A stretch of 64,000 nucleotides of DNA from Octopus sinensis (Eukaryota), in NCBI RefSeq assembly GCF_006345805.1, contig NC_042999.1, forward strand, positions 139,872,001 to 139,936,000, written 5' to 3'. Under the pieces are notes generated by a model, which had not been told where the DNA came from, searched no databases, and worked only from the letters and a program-made list of their open reading frames with translations. Shown here in pieces: positions 4,116-54,118 of the stretch (its first letter is position 1; the number at the start of each line of letters is the position of its first letter). The translations under genes and the position numbers were made by a program.

Positions 4116-6321
4116 GGACAGAGATTTAGGGACATATTACTTGAAGCCTCTGACGAAGTAGAAGGGGATAGAGCATCACAGGGGGTAGAAGACAGCTGGA
4201 CGTTTCTAAGGGACAACCTGCTGAGAGCCACTGACCAGATCTGTGGCTGGTGCAAAGTCCCCTCTCGACCTAGAATAACGTGGTGGTGGAACAATATTGT
4301 AGACAGGGCTATTAGAGAAAAGAGACAGGCTTGGAAGGTCTGGAAAAATGGGGGTAGCAGGGAATTGTATCAGACTGCCAAAAGAGAAGCTAGGAGACAG
4401 GTTTATTTAGCCAGAGGGGAAGCAGATAAGAAAAAATTTGCCAATGTTCTGCGCCGTGAGGACCAAAGACTGGAGGTGTTTCGTGTTGCAAGACAGTGTT
4501 TGAGAGAGAATCGTGATGTGGTAGGAGAGAAGTGTGTTCGCATGGAAGATGGTTCACTTGCGCTAAATGAGGATGCGAAGAGAGAGGTTTGGAGATGCCA
4601 CTATGAAAGGTTGCTGAATGAAGAAAATGAATGGGATAAAGAGAGTCTGCCGAATGTTGACCCAACAGAGGGACCAGCTATCCGAGTTGATAGTTCTGTG
4701 GTAGCTAAGGCAATTAGAAGCATGAAGACAGGGAAAGCCCCAGGCCCATCAGGAATCACTGCAGAGATGCTCAAAATGTCTGGTAGTGTCGGCTATAGCC
4801 TAGTCACCCATATAGTTAATCAGGTGATACACAAAGGGGTCATACCCAATGACTGGTGTAGCAGTATAATAGTCAACTGCTACAAAGGTAAAGGTGATGC
4901 CCTAGATACAAATAACTACAGAGGTATCAAGCTGTTGGACCAGGTGATGAAGGTTACGGAGAGGGTCATAGCCCAACTAATTAGAGAGAGAGTTAGTTTA
5001 GATGAGATGCAGTTTGGGTTTGTGCCAGGGAAAAGTACTACTGATGCTATATTCCTGGTAAGGCAGCTGCAGGAGAAATACCTAGCCAAAGATAAGCCCC
5101 TGTACCTGGCTTTTGTTGACATGGAGAAAGCCTTCGACAGGGTCCCCCGATCCCTTATCTGGTGGGCAATGAGAAAACTAGGGATAGATGAATGGTTAGT
5201 GAGAGCTGTGCGGGCCATGTATAGGGACGCCGCTAGTAGGGTGAGGGTTGGAAATGAGTACAGTGAAGAATTCCGGGTAGAGGTAGGGGTCCACCAAGGC
5301 TCAGTACTCAGCCCCCTCCTATTTATCATAGTCCTCCAGGCAATAACGGAGGAATTCAAGACAGGATGCCCTTGGGAGCTCCTCTATGCTGAGTCGCTAT
5401 CAGAACTGGAGGAGAAGTTTCAGGTGTGGAAACAAGGATTAGAATCGAAGGGCCTCAGAGTCAATCTAGCTAAAACCAAAGTCGTAATCAGTAGGAAGGT
5501 AGACAAATCACAAACACCTTCAGGTAGATGGCCCTGCTCGATCTGTAGAAAAAGGTGTAGGTAGAAACTCTATAAGATGCACCAAGTGTAAGCTATGGAC
5601 ACATAAGAGATGCAGCAATGTCAAAGGAAGGCTAACTAGGAAGATGGTTTTTGTATGTGGCAGATGCTCAGGAACAATAAACACTGAAAATGCTCTGAGA
5701 CCAACTTCCGTCACTTTCCAGGGAGAAAAACTAGAAATAGTTGATAGTTTCCGTTACCTAGGTGACCAAGTCAGCAGCGGGGGTGGGTGTGCTGAAAGTG
5801 TAACTGCTAGAGTAAGAATAGCTTGGGCAAAGTTCAGAGAGCTCTTACCTCTGCTGGTGACAAAAGGCCTCTCGCACAGAGTGAAAGGCAGACTGTATGA
5901 TGCGTGTGTACGAACAGCCATGCTACATGGCAGTGAAACATGGGCCGTGACTGCTGAGGATATGCGTAAGCTCGCTAGAAATGAAGCCAGTATGCTCCGA
6001 TGGATGTGTAATGCCGGTACTCACACTCGGCAGAGTGTAAGTACCTTGAGAGAAAAGCTGGACCTAAGAAGCATCAGTTGTGGTGTGCAAGAGAGACGTT
6101 TGCGCTGGTATGGTCATGTGGCGAGAATGGATGAAGATAGTTGTGTGAAAAAGTGCCACACCCTAGCGGTTGAGGGAACCTGTGGAAGAGGCAGACCCAG
6201 GAAAACCTGGGACGAGGTGGTGAAGCACGACCTTCGAACTTTAGGTCTCACTGAGGAAATGACTAGAGACCGAGACCTCTGGAAGTGTGCTGTGCGCGAG
6301 AAGACCCGGCAGGACAAGTGA
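4116..6321 (+). pseudogene. RTE reverse transcriptase ORF with embedded PHD-like finger; +1 frameshift at 5549-5553 and catalytic YADD lost
   Basis: RT motifs KAPGPSG, NYRGIKLL, QFGFVPGKST, FVDMEKAFDRV, GVHQGSVLSPLLF and FRYLG are present. The catalytic region reads ELLYAESL. An A5 run shifts the frame before GVGRNSIRC. Confidence 0.9.
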
Positions 6322-8197: not shown

Positions 8198-8220
8198 TAC
8201 CGTATTTCGGTATGTATAAA
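8198..8220. mobile_element. pogo-type terminal inverted repeat remnant
   Basis: TA + CCGTATTTCGGTATGTATAA resembles pogo-family termini. It lies about 65 bp downstream of the Brinker-type exon. No partner TIR was found. Confidence 0.5.
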
Positions 8221-8282
8221 CAGCATTTCTGCATAGCACTCAGCCATTCTTTCGCTTGCTTGTTATCATCAGCTGTATTTAC

Positions 8283-8444
8283 TTTCGGCAGTTTCTCGAG
8301 CTTATCTTTCTGCTTTCGCCATTCTCTGACCGATTTCTCATCGACAGTGAATTGTCGACCAGCAGCTCGGTTCCCATGTATTTCGGCATAAGCTATCACT
8401 TTTAACTTCTGTTTAGCAGAGAACGATTTTCGCGCACGACCCAT
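8283..8444 (-). CDS. Exon encoding a Brinker-type (pogo/POGK-like) HTH DNA-binding domain
   Basis: MGRARKSFSAKQKLKVIAYAEIHGNRAAGRQFTVDEKSVREWRKQKDKLEKLPK, 54 codons, then phase-0 donor AAA|GTAAAT. Confidence 0.68.
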
Positions 8445-10805: not shown

Positions 10806-11046
10806 CCAAATAAAACGTCGGTAGATCATAAGGACTTTCCTTGCGGTTGTTCCAAAAGTGCCTGCTGCATACTCGATGGTCACGACTAATGTGCTTCACT
10901 TCATCGTAATTATTCGGATCATAACCAGCGCGTCGTATCCACTCATTTCTTAAACGGACATTTTTCCATGGTAGTCGGTAGAAGCTAATCGGCCCGCCTT
11001 TCTTCTGAATGGAGCGACAGCCTTTCACTATACAGTTAGCCGGCAT
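10806..11046 (-). CDS. First coding exon encoding a THAP zinc finger (THAP-A)
   Basis: MPANCIVKGC..FYRLP..W..RVCSRHF..LPTF has the C2CH THAP signature. 80 codons + 1 nt, then phase-1 donor TTG G|GTAAAG; read-through stops 5 codons later. Confidence 0.8.
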
Positions 11047-20913: not shown

Positions 20914-21862
20914 CTACAGAGAACAAAACAGTAATTATTACAATAGAAGAAAATCTATGAATGTTGAAAGAAATATTCTGGAGGAAGTAGCTGTCTTTTA
21001 AAAAAAAAATCTTGACTCAGATAGCAGACAGCAAAGAATGAAAACAGAAATTGGAGGATGAGACTGTAATATAATTACTGTTTCTAACATAAATGCAAGG
21101 CCTGAAATTTTGGAGTATAGGCGGTTTAACTGATTAAATCAATACCAGTCAGTACCTGACTGGCACATTATTTTAATTACACCAAAAGGATGAAAGGCAA
21201 AATTGGGCTTGGTGGGATTTAAAATTAGAATGAAAAAAGTACTAGAAAAATATTGCAAGGCATTTATTCCAACACACATGATTAATGCATACTTCATAAA
21301 CTCTAAAACGAGGGAATGCAAAATTGACACCATAAGTACTTCAACTAAGAATAAAAGTAAATATGCTAATTCTGTTGAGGTCAACTTTGCCTTTCAACCT
21401 TTGGTGGTAGTGGGGGTGGGTTGGTCAATAAAATAAGTACTAGTTGAACCCTAGGGTTGTTGTAATCAATTTATTCTCTCCTTTGAAATTGCTGGCCTTG
21501 TGCCAAAATTTAAAGCCAGTATAAGTCAATGTCACAAAGCACTATTTCTATAACCACCTACTTCCCTTAATAATAATATTAAGGCGAATGATCAGGGTTG
21601 TAGGGGTTTTCAGTACCCTTGAACACTTAAAACCATCACAAAAACACTTATTTGGGCCTCCACCTTAATAATTTTGTTTTTTCTTATTACAATAAAAAAA
21701 AACTGAAAAAGTCTCAGCCAACTGCCTGGAGTAGTTAAACAGCCAGCTGAAAACAAGAATCAACAACATTCCAGTTGACAATTTTCATAGATCTGTAACT
21801 GTCAGAATTATATATATATAAACACACACACACACATATATATATAAGAACTTCAAACTTAC

Positions 21863-21902
21863 CAACATCATATTCTTCATTTATCTGATTTTGAGATTTC
21901 AA
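21863..21902 (-). CDS. Candidate 40-nt coding exon (LKSQNQINEEYDV + 1 nt), phase 0 in and phase 1 out
   Basis: Acceptor TTTATTTTTTTCTCCAG| and donor TTG|GTAAGT; the phase-0 frame is open. Confidence 0.55.
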
Positions 21903-22476
21903 CTGGAGAAAAAATAAACATATTCTATATTAGATAATATATAATGCATTTTAATTTCGTTAGACACTAAAATAAACAAGCAAGCAAAATAGACAGTATG
22001 ATGGGACTCCTGAAAGTTGTGTGAGGAGCGAGTGTATATAGCTGCCATTTCAAACTATTAAAATAAGTAGCTAAGTCACTACAAACCACACATAAAATGG
22101 GCATGAATATTATAATCCTAAATATAACATTTGAAGTGATGGTCATGTTTGTCAAATTTCTACTCAATGTTGCTACTAGGATAGATGGAAGGGAAGATGA
22201 ATTTCACATCATTGCTTTGAACAAGATACTATATAAATACATCAAAGAATAGCGAGATGTGGTATCATATTTCATAATATTTGTTCGATTCTTTTCTACA
22301 TTATATGATACTCATAATTTCACTCTGATATGATTCATATGAACAAGAGCATTATCAGGGAAGGGATTTAGTGACTCTGCAAAAGCTCTAAGTAAATTAA
22401 TTCTTCTATCTTAGCAGAACAGCTCAAGGGAGATTACTAGTTATGGTCTCTATAACCTTTCAGTGTGATACAATAG

Positions 22477-22875: not shown

Positions 22876-24388
22876 GTATCTCACAAAAATATGTACACCC
22901 CTAAACAAATTTCAGTAAAATTGCCATTACTCTGATAATATCGAAGGAAATCAAACGAAATTTATACAGAATAAAGTATATTATACATGCAAATATACAA
23001 ATTTGGAATACAAAACAATAAGCATTTTCAAACGATACAAAAATATGTACACCCCAAAGAATTATTTGCCATATTCAATATTTGGTGTGACCGTCCTTGC
23101 TTTCAATGACAGTTTTCTGGGCATAGAGTCAACTAAATTTCAGCAGTTAACCGATTAAATCAACCTCCATTCATCCTGAATGATGGCTTTCAACTGTGTT
23201 ACACTGCGGGGCTTTTTTCTCCTCAACCTTACTTTTCAAAACACCCCACAGATGTTCTATTGGGTTGAAATCAGGGGACATGGTAGGTCAAGGCAATGCC
23301 TTTTCCTTTTTATATGTTAAAAACTAAGTCGTCATCTTCCTAGTTCTTTGAGGCTTTTCAACATTGCTTTCTGCAATAAGTCACAATAAAGCCTCGAACC
23401 CATTGTTCTCTCAATAAATGTGAGTCCTCCCACACCAGCCGCACGCATGCATCCCCAAAGCCTAACACTTCCACCGCCATGTTTCAGGGCAGGCACGGTG
23501 CATTTGTCACTATCTTCACCTGGTGGTCGCAATACTCATTTAATACCATCTGACACAAACAGGTTGATTTTAGGCTCGTCAGAAAAAAAAAAAACCATTC
23601 AAAAACTCCTTCCCCTTACTTACGTAGGCTTCGGCAAAAGAAAGACGACTTGATTTATGCCTGGTAGTGAGGAGAGGCTTCCTACGAGGAATACGTCCAT
23701 GAAGACCACACTGGTTCAAACTTCGGCGAACTGTTTGAGCGGATACACTCTTTTCACTTACAGAAGACACTTCTTGGGCCAAAGATGAAGCGGTACGACG
23801 CCTGTCGTCCATCACGCAACGTTGGATGTGTCGAATATCACGCGCAGTTAAAATAGAAGGGCGACCTGGACGATGTTTATTGCTTAGCCGTCCAGTAGCT
23901 TTGTACTTCTGAATTACTTTGGCAATTGTGTTTACGCTAATATCTGTTCGTTCGCTAATTAACTTGTATCCTAAACCATTCTTGTGCAAATTAAAAATAA
24001 TTTTCTTCAAATCTTCAGACAATTCTTTTCCTTTTGGTGCCATTTTAATCACAATGAAGATTTTCACCACGGTACACAAATAAGAATTCCTGTAGATGCA
24101 ATAACAGTAACCGGTGCAAAAATGCCAGGAGAAATAATTTATTAGAATTGAAATTATCAGCAATATTTTGATTTAGTGAAAAAAGTGGATAAAATATTGA
24201 ATGTAGCAAATTTCCTCTATTGTGTACATATTTTTGTAACGTTTGAAAATTAATATTTCGTTCCTATCTTTGAAAATGTTTATTATTTCATTCAGTATAA
24301 ATTTCGTTTGATTTTCTTCGATATTATTAGTGTAATGGCAATTTTACTGAAATTTGTTTAGGGGTGTACATACTTCTGTGAGATGCCC
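22874..24388 (-). mobile_element. Near full-length Tc1 (DD34E) transposon
   Basis: TA-CAGTATCTCACAAAAATATGTACACCCC TIR of about 100 bp is mirrored at 24285-24388. Transposase motifs MAPKGKEL, GRPS, KHGGGSV..WGC and SPDFNPIEHLW are present. Confidence 0.93.
23070..24043 (-). pseudogene. Tc1 transposase: N-terminal HTH region intact, DDE region frameshifted and with stops
   Basis: Open from ATG 24043 to the poly-T slip near 23590; the catalytic half is disrupted. Confidence 0.85.
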
Positions 24389-31139: not shown

Positions 31140-31677
31140 CAAACTTCACACCAATATGCGTGCTCATATGCGACGTAATATCACATCAGCAGCATTTCCT
31201 CACACCCTCCTTGCACTTGGCGAAGGCAAAATACCAGGGGATGAAAATGGTAATATTGCCATCGATTCCATTTGTACCATTGTTAAGACGCCTTCTGATC
31301 TCAGAGATGCAGTGTTCCCAGATCTACAAGCTAATTATCAGAATATGGATTGGATTGGCAAAAAGGCTATACTGGCCCCGAGGAATAAAACTGTTCACCA
31401 TATTAATGATGAAATGCTAAAACTCATTCCTGGGGAAGTCTATGTATATCAGTCTATCGATACAACTCCTGACCCAGAGGACGTCATCAACTATCCAATA
31501 GAGGTACTCAATTCCTTTGAGCACCCCGGACTACCACCACACTTTCTCAAACTTAAAGTTGGTGCCCCTATAATGCTCATCAGAAATTTGGTTCCCCCAA
31601 AACAATGCAATGGCACACGTTTGATCGTTAAGTCCTTATCTCCCACCGTAAGCTTATATCAATATTTGCCTGAATAA
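31140..31677 (+). pseudogene. Helitron RepHel Pif1 helicase fragment
   Basis: KLHTNMRAH, LLALGEG, AILAPRN, GLPPHFLKLKVGAPIMLIRNL and CNGTRL. Confidence 0.9.
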
Positions 31678-38799: not shown

Positions 38800-39327
38800 C
38801 AGAGAATTTCCTTCAGATAATTTTGGATCTGATGGATTTCTGCCGGACAGGACTATATTATCGTTTTTCGCTTTACGACTTACTAAATCCTGCCATTGCT
38901 CTGTAGGCTTTTCTGTGCTCAAAACAAATTGTGTGGTGGGTGAATTTTGAAAAGTTTGCAATGTCATTTTAGGGCACTGTATTGTGGGTATCGCTCCTGG
39001 CTTCAAGAACACGCGTGTGCGGCATCCGAATTTCTTCATTAAAACCCCTAGAGAATCATCGCTGGTGAAATGAAGAGAACATATGGCAGATGAAACACAT
39101 GGTGCCCAGTTTTTACGCCCAGTCTGAACGAAATTGATCCATTTGGACCTTAAAACGGGATCCTTCGGAAAGCGATGTAAACTGGTCCCGGATCCTGCAC
39201 TCGAAGACTGAATGGTATCACAAAATCTAACCACGCAATGTTGGGGCATTATTTCGATCGATCTGCTTATCTTCACGATAGATCCAAAACTATCTCTTTT
39301 CAAAAATATTTCAGTGAAAATTGCCAC
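38800..39327 (-). CDS. Phase 0-0 exon (528 nt) encoding a THAP zinc finger plus linker (THAP-B)
   Basis: Acceptor CTTCTTTTCTGTTTATGTAG|GTG. MPQHCVVRFC..LHRFPKD..W..ICSLHF..LKPGAIPTI. Donor CTG|GTAAGT. Confidence 0.85.
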
Positions 39328-39705: not shown

Positions 39706-40282
39706 GGAAAATACGAAGGAAGAGTATTTTGTGTATGTAGTCGGCTATCTGTTAGTGTGAAAGTAAATATAAGAAATAAAAAGGCGTTGTTAACCAATTC
39801 ATTTCGTTTCAAGTCAACCTACATTACGAGTAACGATGCATAACAGGTTACTCCTTCTCTATCCCCCTCATACTTTTTCTATCAAACACATGTCACTGAC
39901 AAATAGCAGTTTTTCATTGAATGAAAACTGATAGAAATGTGACAACAGCAGAAACTACTTTACTAATTTTCAATAGCTTTTAAGGATAAACTATGTCAAA
40001 AATAAATGATCTACCTTGTTTTTATTGAGTAACAAATCATCTTCATTTATTACATTTTTCATAATTTCATTCAGTTTAACGATAACATTTTGCAAATCGC
40101 CTGCCATTTTCTTCTTTTTGTTTTGGTAACACGTGCTGCCACCTGATGAGTGTTACCATGTGATAACAATCATTCCGTAGCAACAATACAGTTATCTCCC
40201 TTTATTTATGCTTCCGAGGCTTCGGAATTCCCGATGACCAATTTTCGATTGTCTAACTTATGATATCACTATGGTGAACTAC

Positions 40283-45800: not shown

Positions 45801-46370
45801 CAGCATGACACTGTATGTGACAATATTATTTCTATATTCTGAATTGATCCACTCAATGGGTTCTATATAATTTTTGTCTACCCAATTTTATTCACAAAGT
45901 GTGGGTCAACATATGTCTCAGATTCCATGCAATGGGATTGAACTAAGGATCTTATGACTGAGAAACAAACTTCTTAACCAATTAGACATCTCTCTCTCTC
46001 TTATATATATATTCAAATAAGTAAAACACAATATCATGAATAGCGATAGCGAAACCAGTCGATATATTAAAATTATATTAAAACTATGTAAGTGTGCGTA
46101 TTTTCCTTTTTTAATTTCTTATATATATATAGGAAAATTTTATTAGAAATATCCATTTTTCAGGAATTTATGAGGAAACAAAGTGGGTGGGGGCTACACT
46201 TCTGTAGATATGTCGGAAAAGCCCCTCCCCTTTTTTAAAGCATATTGAAGAAGCAGAGATCAAGTTTTAAAAATTCACGCTTAATCAAACAAACAAATGC
46301 CAAGAAATCTGAGACTATTCTATGGAATTTGTCCAAATTCTATAACAAAAGTAAAGACAACAGTATAGAC

Positions 46371-46589
46371 CAGGGCTCCCAAACTACGGTCCACGGGGTC
46401 AGTTCATCCATGCTTGGAACATCTTATATCTGTGAGCAAACATTTTCAAAAATGAAGTATGTGAAGTCAGCACATGGAACGAGGTTGACTGATGAAAATT
46501 TGAAAGCAATTCTCTTGGTTGGATGCAGCAATTCCAAAGCAAATATTGATATCTTAAAAGCTAAATACCATTTTCACAAATCTTATTAA
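46371..46589 (+). mobile_element. Non-autonomous hAT fragment: TIR fused to the dimerisation-domain coding end
   Basis: CAGGGCTCCCAAACTACGGTCCACGGG terminus followed by SMLGTSYICEQTFSKMKYVKSAHGTRLTDENL. Confidence 0.8.
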
Positions 46590-48468: not shown

Positions 48469-48873
48469 TTTGTTCGTGTTTCTTTGTCTTATACATCCAG
48501 GAGTATTTGTGATAGCCAGTATTTCTGGAACAGATATTGTTGAAATGGGACTGTTTATTGCGACAGATAATCTTGTTGCATGTGATTCCATCGCTCGTAT
48601 CATCTCTCCTTCCGCTCTAAACTTATTACTTTTCTCAATGTTCGTCGAATCTTCAGTGTGGTTGTGAGTCTTGTGCAATTTTGTTATTGTGTTGTTACAG
48701 ATGTGCAACCTTGCTTTGCAACGCAACGATTTTTTTCTGTAACATGAGTAAAAGCGTGTGTCTTCATCTGTTTTACTCATTTTTTCATAATTGAAAATAT
48801 ATCCTTCGTACATCACTTTGTCGTGACCGTCTGTTACAGGAATCCATATACCGTTATATGGGTTTTGCTCCAT
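48469..48873 (-). CDS. Exon encoding a FLYWCH/WRKY-GCM1-type zinc finger of MULE origin
   Basis: YEGYIFNY..FYSC..C KARLHI..HNH, 135 uninterrupted codons, then phase-0 donor AAA|GTAAGT. Confidence 0.82.
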
Positions 48874-49451: not shown

Positions 49452-50326
49452 CAGTGCCTCCTCATTGAAGCAAACTAAGGTGGGGGGAGGATGTCCGTTT
49501 TAGTCAACTGTCCGAATTAACCGATGGTAGAATTTAATATTGTATACGTACATGATATTGGAAGTATATGCAACATTTGAGTACATACTGTAAAAATATA
49601 TAACTATGCAAGTATAAATTCTGTTTTTAAAATTATTTAACATTAATACATAAAATTAAAAAAAAAGTTCATACCGTAAGTTCCCCGGTTGATGGGCTAC
49701 CTGCTTCTCCAGTGGTAATTTTATTACACATTCCATGGCGATTTCTAAATCGCCATAACCACCCATCACTAGCTACAAAATTGTCGATGCCCATGTCCCT
49801 AGCTAACTTGACAGCAGCACTTTGAATTTCCACACCACGGATGTTATTACCACAAGATCGTTGATGGATAAACCACTTCGTTACAGCTTCCTCAAGATTT
49901 GTATCTTTTGCAACTCTCATACGCTTCCTTGCACCAACAGATAGTTTAGAATTTGCAGCAACATTATATTTCAAAGAAAATGTAGTAAGTTTGTCCTTAG
50001 CTTTGCGTATACCTGAAACTGTCTGTTTTTTAATACCATATTGAGCACAAATACTCGTCACCGAAGCACCAGCCTCTAACTTCTTTATAAGTTCCAGTTT
50101 CTGGATCACAGATAGAGTAACATGCTTTTTCTTTGGCTTCTTACTTTCTCTTGTAGCCATCGTGTATATTACGAGTCTGAAAGTTATCTAATTCCAGAAA
50201 TGCGAAAGGAAATTGCAAAGAGAAACATTACCAGTGAAATGGCAGTGAAAATCAACATTGTCAGTCTCTCGCTTAAATCAGATTTCGACCGGTTTATCCG
50301 ATATCTGATTTTAACGAATGCATGTA
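49452..50326 (-). mobile_element. Eroded Tigger/pogo deletion derivative that hosts the HTH exon
   Basis: TA-CAGTG.. left terminus with Tigger-like subterminal GTCCGAATTAACCGA. The right terminus is degenerate. No DDE coding sequence. Confidence 0.55.
49675..50160 (-). CDS. Exon encoding CENP-B N-terminal HTH plus Tc5-type HTH (Tigger/Jerky-like DNA-binding region)
   Basis: LSVIQKLELI..YGIKKQTVSGI..LEEAVTKWF..FVASDGWLWRFRNRH, 162 codons. Donor ACG|GTATGA is phase 0. Acceptor ..ACTTTCAG| at 50177/50176. Confidence 0.82.
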
Positions 50327-50396: not shown

Positions 50397-50900
50397 ATCA
50401 TCACCTTCATTTAACGTCCGTTTTCCATGCTGGCATGGGTTGAATGGTTTGACTGGTAAGCTGGGGAGCTGCACCAGGTTCCAGTCTGATTTGGCACGGT
50501 TTCTGTGGCTGGATGCCCTTCCTAACGCCAACCACTCCAAGAGTGTAGTCGGTACTTGTTATGCGACACTGGCATTGGCCACACTTATGATTTCACTTGG
50601 CTTGATGGTCTCCTCATATCGCCAAAGGTCTTGGTCACTTGTCATTGCCTCTGTGAGGCCCAATGTTTGATGGTCATGCTTCACCACCTTGTCCCATGTC
50701 TTCCTGGGTCTATCTCCTCCACACATTCCCTCCACTGTTAGAGTTTGGTACATTTTCACACAGCTGGCCTCATCCGTGCACGTCACATGACCATACCAAT
50801 GCAGTCGTCTCTCTTGCACACCACATCTGATGCATCTTATGCCCAACTTTTCTCTCAAGACACTGTTGTGCATTCACACTGACATTACACATCCAGCTTC
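50397..50900 (-). mobile_element. RTE 3' end fragment
   Basis: LREKLGIRCIRCGVQERRLHWYGHV..GDRPRKTWDKVV, a truncated 3'UTR and a tail near 50400. Confidence 0.88.
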
Positions 50901-50994
50901 ATTTCTTTCAAATCTGCAATCAATTTTACATCTGACACGTGACACACTGTACACCAGTACAGGTAAATACTCTTTTGAAAGAGAGAGTGTGCAT

Positions 50995-52143
50995 TGTGCA
51001 TCGTCCAGGAATGATGGCATATCAGCTGAGGTATATGAATATGGTAGCAGTCACCTGCAGAACAAGTTACGTGAACTCTTAATCTGGGAATTAAGATCAG
51101 TCCCACAGGAGTTTAAAGATACCTTTATTGTCCATCTTTATACGCATAAAGGCAACAAATGTGAAAGTGACAACCATAGAGGTATCTCCCTTTTGTGTGT
51201 TGCTGGGAAGATCCTTAGAAAGTTTATCTTAAACAGACTAAATGATGCCCTTGCCAGCTTAGTGTTGCCTGAATCTCAGCATAGATTTTGGGCTGGTAGA
51301 GGCACAGTAGATATGATTTTTAGCCTAAGGCAGCTGCAGGAAAAGGTTTGTGAGCAGAACCAAGAACATTTTGTTACTTTTGTAGATCTAACTGAAGCTT
51401 TTGACACTATATCTAGGGATGTTCTTTTGGTTGTCCTTAGAAAGCTAGGTGTTCCCAAAAAGATGCCCAATGTCATCATTTCTTTCCATCAAGGGATGAT
51501 GGCTTCTGTCAGATCTAGCGGGTAAGTGTCCGATTCATTCACAGTTTCAAATGAGATGAAACAAGGCTGTGTTCTTGCACTGCTCTTATTTGCTTTGTAT
51601 TTCTCCATCATGTTGGAAACAATGTTTGTGGGTGTTAAAAAAGGAGAAAAGTTTGAGTACAGAACTGGTGGTGGCTTGTTCAACCAACTGCACTTCAAAG
51701 CAAAAACTAAGATTTTGGTACAAGCAGTTCAAGATTTGCTCTTTGCAGATGATTGTGCACTTGTAGCATACACTCTTGAGGACATACAATGGATTCTAAA
51801 CAACTTTTCATGTGCATTGAAGGCTTTTGATCTGACCATCAGCATCAAAAGAACTAATCTTGTCCATCTGCTCATTCTTGACCATCTTCCCACTGTTGCC
51901 CCTATTGTATATGTTGATGGGAAAGCATTAAAAACTGTTCTTGGTTCCATTGTGTCCAATGATGCTAAGATGGATAAAGTAATTGTGTCCAGAATCAGGA
52001 AGGCTAATTCCACTTTTGGTAAGCTTTATCATAGGCTTTGGAACAGCCACAACGTATTGTTGAAGGTGAAAGTCAATGTAAAGAAGTCAGAGGTCTTGAC
52101 AACATTGCTTTATGGTGCTGAATCTTATGAACTTTTCAGCTGA
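50995..52143 (+). pseudogene. Degenerate RTE/BovB-type reverse transcriptase
   Basis: NHRGISLL, FVDLTEAFDTISR, KQGCVLA and DLLFADDCAL, with a stop at 51523-51525. Confidence 0.88.
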
Positions 52144-53941: not shown

Positions 53942-54118
53942 CATCATAAAGTTTTTATGTTTCTTTACATAACGGATTAATGTTGTTTTTGGAATGCTAA
54001 ATATTTTAGAAGCTTTCATGTAACCCAGCTCTCCTTTCAAGACAGCCATAATAGCTCCTTGAAGATTTTCTTTGTGCCATGAACCCTGTTGTGTTTTTCT
54101 GCAATAATTCCTCACCAT
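53942..54118 (-). CDS. Phase 0-0 exon (177 nt) encoding a pipsqueak-type HTH
   Basis: Acceptor TTATTATTTTCAG|ATG. MVRNYCRKT..WHKENLQGAIMAVLKGELGYMKASKIFSIPKTTLIRYVKK. Donor ATG|GTAAGT. Confidence 0.85.

Follow-up and report, generated by a model that had tools for sequence, protein, structure and literature searches.

What is a 40-nt open segment with consensus-like splice signals doing on the minus strand of an Octopus sinensis contig, and which exons, if any, does it join? The question arises in a stretch of 64,000 nucleotides (NC_042999.1, assembly GCF_006345805.1; hereafter the window, whose first letter is position 1), in which an earlier note, made from the letters alone, had proposed the segment as the first constant exon of a gene and as a phase adaptor for several upstream exons that encode DNA-binding domains. 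We read it, with a probability of roughly 0.9, as a genuine internal coding exon of the orthologue of a variable-first-exon BTB gene, annotated as LOC106877732 in Octopus bimaculoides and as LOC115209932 in O. sinensis. The sequence features and the phases are read from the window itself and the exon order from annotated proteins of two species, and we infer inclusion of the exon in mRNA from these gene models. Taken by itself the 40-nt exon is an ordinary short linker exon that is already annotated; the wider interest lies in the locus to which it belongs. The features on which the argument draws are collected in Table 1.

Table 1. Positions of the exons, splice signals and transposon remnants discussed in the text. 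Strand is relative to the window; a slash marks an exon–intron boundary.
Feature	Position	Strand	Details
Brinker-type first exon	8201..8444	−	Pfam BrkDBD; 244 nt; phase-1 donor ATACG/GTACTG
THAP-A first exon	10806..11046	−	Pfam; 241 nt; phase-1 donor TTTG/GTAAAG
5′ splice site of the 40-nt exon	21857..21862	−	GTAAGT (sequence)
40-nt exon	21863..21902	−	40 nt; enters in phase 0, exits in phase 1
3′ splice site of the 40-nt exon	21903..21933	−	polypyrimidine tract tttattttttctccag and candidate branch point
Decayed Tc1/mariner copy	23579-24163, remnants to about 22700	−	1.7 kb upstream of the 40-nt exon
THAP-B exon	38800..39327	−	Pfam THAP 3.7e-17; ATG 39249; phase-0 GTAAGT donor 38800
Short 5′ exon	40015..40062	−	coding part MKNVINEDDLLLNKNK; phase-0 donor AAG/GTAGAT
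FLYWCH exon	48469..48873	−	Pfam; 405 nt from ATG; phase-0 GTAAGT donor at 48469
Tigger-type exon	49675..50160	−	Pfam CENP-B_N and HTH_Tnp_Tc5; 486 nt from ATG; phase-0 GTATGA donor
HTH_psq exon	53942..54118	−	MVRNYCRK...KKHKNFMM; 177 nt; phase-0 GTAAGT donor at 53942
Opposite-strand debris in gene introns	4365-6321, 50830-52143, 31156-31677, 46245-46589	+	

Splice signals and reading frame of the 40-nt exon

The exon is present as the earlier note had described it, with a good acceptor and a GTAAGT donor, and is read on the minus strand from 21902 to 21863. Its context is ...tgtttattttttctccag on the acceptor side, TTGAAATCTCAAAATCAGATAAATGAAGAATATGATGTTG as the exon and gtaagtttg at the start of the following intron. 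Translated in frame 1 it reads LKSQNQINEEYDV and leaves one G over, the first base of the next glycine codon, in agreement with the predicted entry in phase 0 and exit in phase 1. This is the single open frame in the exon, TGA interrupting both others. The acceptor itself stands, and the letters that had been quoted for it were wrong by one T, with six Ts after the A rather than seven, a trivial difference. Its polypyrimidine tract passes a filter of at least 11 pyrimidines in 14, and a candidate branch point of the yUnAy type, cTAAt, is predicted from the consensus with its A at 21930, 27 nt 5′ of the AG. On the other side, the intron 3′ of the exon exceeds 21.8 kb and runs out of the window. 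An (AC)7.5 microsatellite with TA repeats on its flanks lies in this intron at 21822-21836, 27-41 nt downstream of the donor.

Signals of this kind also occur elsewhere in the window. When both strands (128 kb) were scanned for an AG preceded by at least 11 pyrimidines in 14, an open segment of 20-100 nt and a GTAAGT, four candidates were returned, the 40-nt exon and three segments within transposon remnants, and the motifs of the exon alone are therefore suggestive and not decisive. In the six-frame translation of the window the peptide is unique. The 800-bp region around the exon is likewise a single copy within the window, and we therefore discarded the view that it belongs to a repeat.

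Gene models that contain the exon

When the translations of the window exons were concatenated and used as a protein query, three isoforms of O. bimaculoides LOC106877732 came up; every one matched a single window exon at 92-97% identity and also had a BTB domain. A second search with the shared region, together with a cluster listing, followed; about 27 of the at least 36 RefSeq isoforms of this gene, which spans about 195 kb in O. bimaculoides, were retrieved. In X5, X6 and X9 the order is a DNA-binding exon, then LKTQNQINEEYDV, then the shared BTB part, which begins GDTQNVQISKQTHRFST. The peptide LKTQNQINEEYDV is found in seven isoforms (X4, X5, X6, X7, X9, X35 and X36) and in one earlier model; five different upstream exons directly precede it, and GDTQNV follows. 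In X35 the 13-residue peptide comes after a 16-residue exon, MKNVINEDDFLLNKNK, and in X36 after a 2-residue start. To our knowledge, NCBI Gnomon includes an alternative isoform only when transcripts or RNA-seq data support it.

The products have the same C-terminal body, in which the BTB/POZ domain is central, and differ in their N-termini. Each of the many alternative 5′ exons contributes a domain of its own, in most cases of transposon origin (THAP, CENP-B/Tc5 HTH, FLYWCH, psq, Brinker-type or DUF3504). Pfam places the BTB domain at residues 357-460 of a 731-residue product, in the shared part, and its best matches among solved structures are the generic dimeric BTBs of IVNS1ABP, ZBTB17/BCL6 and SLX4.

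The window exons are 93-100% identical at the protein level to their O. bimaculoides orthologues, and the peptide of the 40-nt exon is identical at 12 of its 13 residues between the window and the O. bimaculoides isoforms. An O. vulgaris protein, CAI9720176.1 (P0071), carries LKSQNQINEEYDV exactly at residues 136-148, and the FLYWCH exon of the window spliced to the 40-nt exon reproduces its residues 1-148 exactly. Since an O. bimaculoides XP accession stands in the name of this entry, the annotation was probably projected and does not count as independent. From HFVGG onward its sequence agrees throughout with O. sinensis LOC115209932, while O. bimaculoides departs from it at 9 of 566 positions; on this showing the window belongs to O. 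vulgaris or to the very close O. sinensis. The FLYWCH form is the sole one annotated for the window's own species, and seven isoforms constructed from the window, one of them a Tc1 segment joined to the 40-nt exon and the BTB body, had no exact match in the protein collection, where annotation of this species is sparse. Among 44 paralogue and orthologue proteins, including the single protein from Argonauta hians, none carried a peptide resembling that of the exon. Conservation of the exon is thus documented, as far as protein sequences speak, between two Octopus lineages and at the protein level only.

Upstream exons that feed the 40-nt exon

Five further donors had been cited earlier (38800, 48469, 49675, 53942 and 10806), and all are present in the phases assigned to them. 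The first four belong to the THAP-B, FLYWCH, Tigger-type and psq exons, which had been named as phase-0 partners of the 40-nt exon, and the gene models bear this out in every case, with LKTQNQINEEYDV standing directly after the orthologue of psq in X4/X7, of Tigger in X5, of FLYWCH in X9 and of THAP-B in X6. The Tigger-type exon is 93% identical to X5 (P0002) and the THAP-B exon 97% identical to X6 (P0001), the 40-nt exon coming next in both, and the orthologue of the FLYWCH exon, in X9 (P0003), lies directly before LKTQNQINEEYDV. A fifth feeder, the short exon that begins MKNVINEDD..., was missing from the list given in the earlier note; in O. bimaculoides it is spliced either to the 40-nt exon (X35) or to the acceptor of the THAP-B exon (earlier model X4). 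That acceptor is optional and lies at 39327 (tgtttatgtag/GTG), and the THAP-B exon measures 450 nt from its ATG to its donor.

The psq exon has an acceptor of its own, ttattattttcag/ATG, directly 5′ of its ATG, and the intron between it and the 40-nt exon measures 32,039 nt. In X4/X7 (P0086 and P0087, with a Pfam HTH_psq match in P0086) its orthologue stands between a THAP exon and the 40-nt exon, and in these models it is an internal exon and not a first exon. The THAP exon and an optional 25-residue exon that stand 5′ of psq in X4/X7 were absent from the window in a six-frame scan.

All five feeder donors within the window are in phase 0, and the reading frame is compatible at every junction. 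Every DNA-binding open reading frame lies on the minus strand, starts with an ATG and has its donor no more than a few codons past or before the point where the domain ends. In the products Pfam detects the DNA-binding domains and the BTB domain and no DDE domain, the catalytic part of a transposase.

The next exon and the routes into it

The exon that follows the 40-nt exon encodes (G)DTQNVQISKQTHRFST and is referred to here as the GDTQNV exon. A tblastn search and a tolerant six-frame scan of the window found neither this exon nor the HFVGG and AGPSNQ exons further along the shared part. It had been suggested that the 40-nt exon and the THAP-A exon share a next exon outside the window, and this proved correct: the THAP-A exon is 100% identical to X20 (P0085), which reads ...TFYL-GDTQNV without the 13-residue peptide, and both exons join the GDTQNV exon, which the window lacks. 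The Brinker-type exon, by contrast, had been taken as a phase-0 exon in need of another route. Its orthologue in X19 (P0082; 97.6% identical) instead reads through the GTAAAT that had been taken for its donor, runs on for 27 more codons and ends at a phase-1 donor (last exon base 8201), from which it is spliced to the GDTQNV exon as ...CCLYIPKY-GDTQNV. With a phase-1 junction the junction residue is set by the last base of the upstream exon, and it tracks that base, being Gly after a G (the 40-nt, THAP-A and Brinker exons) and Cys in X11. The GDTQNV exon would be 50 nt long (2 + 48), and together with the 40-nt exon it adds a 30-residue linker that is frame-neutral only as a pair.

Ordinary cis-splicing is the likely origin of these junctions, in what would be a variable-first-exon gene. 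A transcript begun at one of the upstream 5′ exons (the psq unit, Tigger, FLYWCH, MKNV or THAP-B) would splice its phase-0 donor to the acceptor of the 40-nt exon, and the phase-1 donor of the latter would then be joined to the (G)DTQNVQISKQTHRFST exon. The THAP-A and Brinker exons, which lie inside that intron, would be skipped, since we read no acceptor for them in the sequence and the gene models show none either. They would begin transcripts of their own, the phase-1 ends of which would join the GDTQNV exon directly. Each first exon would presumably have a separate promoter, and the products are expected to bind DNA and to dimerise through the BTB domain.

The O. bimaculoides isoforms enter the shared part at four places. 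Besides the seven isoforms listed above, which enter at the 40-nt exon, five enter at the GDTQNV exon directly (X10, X11, X19, X20 and X21), seven at the HFVGG exon (X1, X2, X13, X16, X29, X30 and X32) and five at the AGPSNQ exon (X3, X14, X15, X18 and X28). The description of the 40-nt exon as the first constant exon therefore holds only in so far as the group of 5′-most exons shares it; constant it is not, since other isoforms enter at GDTQNV, HFVGG or AGPSNQ. Its description as a phase adaptor is sound as arithmetic but not as a demonstrated purpose: the HFVGG acceptor appears to be in phase 0 and open to phase-0 first exons, which are therefore not forced through the 40-nt exon.

The same phase arithmetic permits an alternative that we consider unlikely, namely that the exon is a regulated switch whose inclusion or skipping tunes the output of the whole upstream isoform group. 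Skipping of the 40-nt exon alone would join a phase-0 first exon to a phase-1 acceptor, and frameshift and mRNA decay would follow. Very short exons often need enhancers for recognition, and this one is only 40 nt long. However, all retrieved isoforms that start at an upstream exon include it, in protein sets to which frame-shifted products are invisible, and its near-consensus splice sites favour constitutive recognition.

A shared exon outside the window, beginning HFVGGNGPTRDHPDPLPV, resembles the C-terminal half of a THAP domain (P0075, P0076 and P0079). This shared exon (HFVGGNGPTRDHPDP...) would constitute the THAP C-terminal half, to be completed by three alternative half-THAP first exons: in X29, X30 and X32 the first exon has ...VCSK at its end, and in P0075 the THAP match by Pfam (residues 6-71) crosses the junction. 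The arrangement suggests that the ancestor was a THAP-BTB gene whose THAP domain was split, and that other domains would have been recruited to it later.

The gene also has a series of paralogues whose gene numbers are close to its own. LOC106877737, -38, -41, -43, -44 and -45 are paralogues on the same 168-Mb O. bimaculoides chromosome record, 44-59% identical in the shared part, and the next downstream gene in O. bimaculoides again combines CENP-B_N, a Tc5 HTH and a BTB domain. This suggests, and does not show, a tandem family of such BTB genes.

Transposon debris in the window

Apart from these exons the window is AT-rich and crowded with the debris of LINE, Tc1 and Helitron elements. Within the decayed Tc1/mariner copy upstream of the 40-nt exon, an HTH open reading frame (24043-23624, with its ATG at 24043) is in phase 0 and ends exactly at a GTAAGT (23624). 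We considered it as a sixth feeder and treat it as a transposon relic: DDE remnants lie downstream in other frames, and the product constructed from it was unmatched. The Tc1 segment, the 40-nt exon and the BTB body together would give a product of 736 aa, a length that would fit the unseen isoform X8. On the opposite strand, the debris in the introns of the gene comprises two reverse-transcriptase-like open reading frames, LINE-derived by the look of their sequence, a Pif1 2B-domain fragment (Helitron-like) and one open reading frame without a Pfam match.

The Tigger-type exon (49675-50160) is 66-77% identical to many Homarus americanus proteins named 'Tigger transposable element-derived protein 7-like', much above the expectation for such distant phyla. 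The likeness might stem from a pogo/Tigger family common to both that was active recently or was transferred horizontally, or else from contamination.

It is highly improbable that the DNA-binding open reading frames are free-standing transposon relics which an annotation pipeline linked in frame with the BTB body by inserting a small open segment: a 2015 genome-project model, A0A0L8GD14 (P0070, 198 aa), does present THAP-B as a stand-alone product, and the window is rich in transposon debris, but five different upstream exons in seven isoforms use one common junction, the peptide is kept at 12 of 13 residues with acceptor, donor and single open frame intact in the window, and the DNA-binding frames lie on one strand, start with an ATG, have donors near the ends of their domains and lack the catalytic part of a transposase.

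Discussion

Our analysis places the 40-nt exon as an internal linker between a set of alternative 5′ exons and the shared body of a BTB gene. The four junctions and the shared next exon that had been predicted from raw sequence all match public gene models.

In the clustered protocadherins and in UGT1A, a row of variable first exons is spliced to common downstream exons and the intervening ones are skipped. The octopus gene resembles these in that its alternative 5′ exons stand in a row on one strand, most of them first exons with an ATG and a donor of their own. It differs in three respects. What varies in octopus is how a nuclear BTB protein binds DNA, through its DNA-binding domain, and neither an extracellular nor a substrate-binding region; there are four nested entry points (the 40-nt, GDTQNV, HFVGG and AGPSNQ exons) rather than one; and some variable units consist of two or three exons, as with THAP and psq in X4/X7.

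In outcome the octopus gene resembles Drosophila lola and mod(mdg4), in which one BTB gene gives rise to 20-30 or more isoforms that differ in their DNA-binding module, FLYWCH among them (PMC11426971). The octopus locus is likewise a single BTB gene with many DNA-binding modules. In the fly genes, however, a constant BTB domain stands at the N-terminus and the variable exons lie 3′, some of them joined by trans-splicing, whereas in octopus the variable DNA-binding exons are 5′ and the BTB domain is central in the shared part. The fly BTBs are moreover of the TTK type, which has been reported as absent from Mollusca (PMC11426971).

The locus may also be set beside fusions of host genes with transposases, since here too modules of the THAP/P element, CENP-B/Tc5 pogo-Tigger, FLYWCH, psq and Brinker types are spliced to a host BTB; the difference is that a single octopus locus holds dozens of captures in the form of alternative 5′ exons. 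The presence of a BTB domain in octopus CENPB and THAP proteins has been noted already (PMC10027918), in a study that counts the products as separate genes and in which the words 'isoform' and 'alternative' are unused. We found no description of the locus or of its architecture in the searchable literature, where the locus identifier is likewise unmentioned.

We give about even odds to a broader proposition, that the 40-nt exon is the collecting acceptor of a type of locus for which we found no description: a cephalopod BTB gene of ~195 kb, the mirror image of lola and mod(mdg4), with at least 25 promoter-linked 5′ exons, each with a captured transposon DNA-binding domain of its own, four nested entry points, combinatorial pairing of the isoforms through the BTB body and an ancestry in a split THAP domain. 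The octopus locus would be convergent with, and oppositely oriented to, insect lola and mod(mdg4). The locus is more notable than the 40-nt exon, since one BTB gene exchanges its transposon-derived DNA-binding domain at the N-terminus by means of alternative 5′ exons, and it offers a natural case for the study of how splicing captures transposase domains and of transcription-factor diversity in cephalopods.
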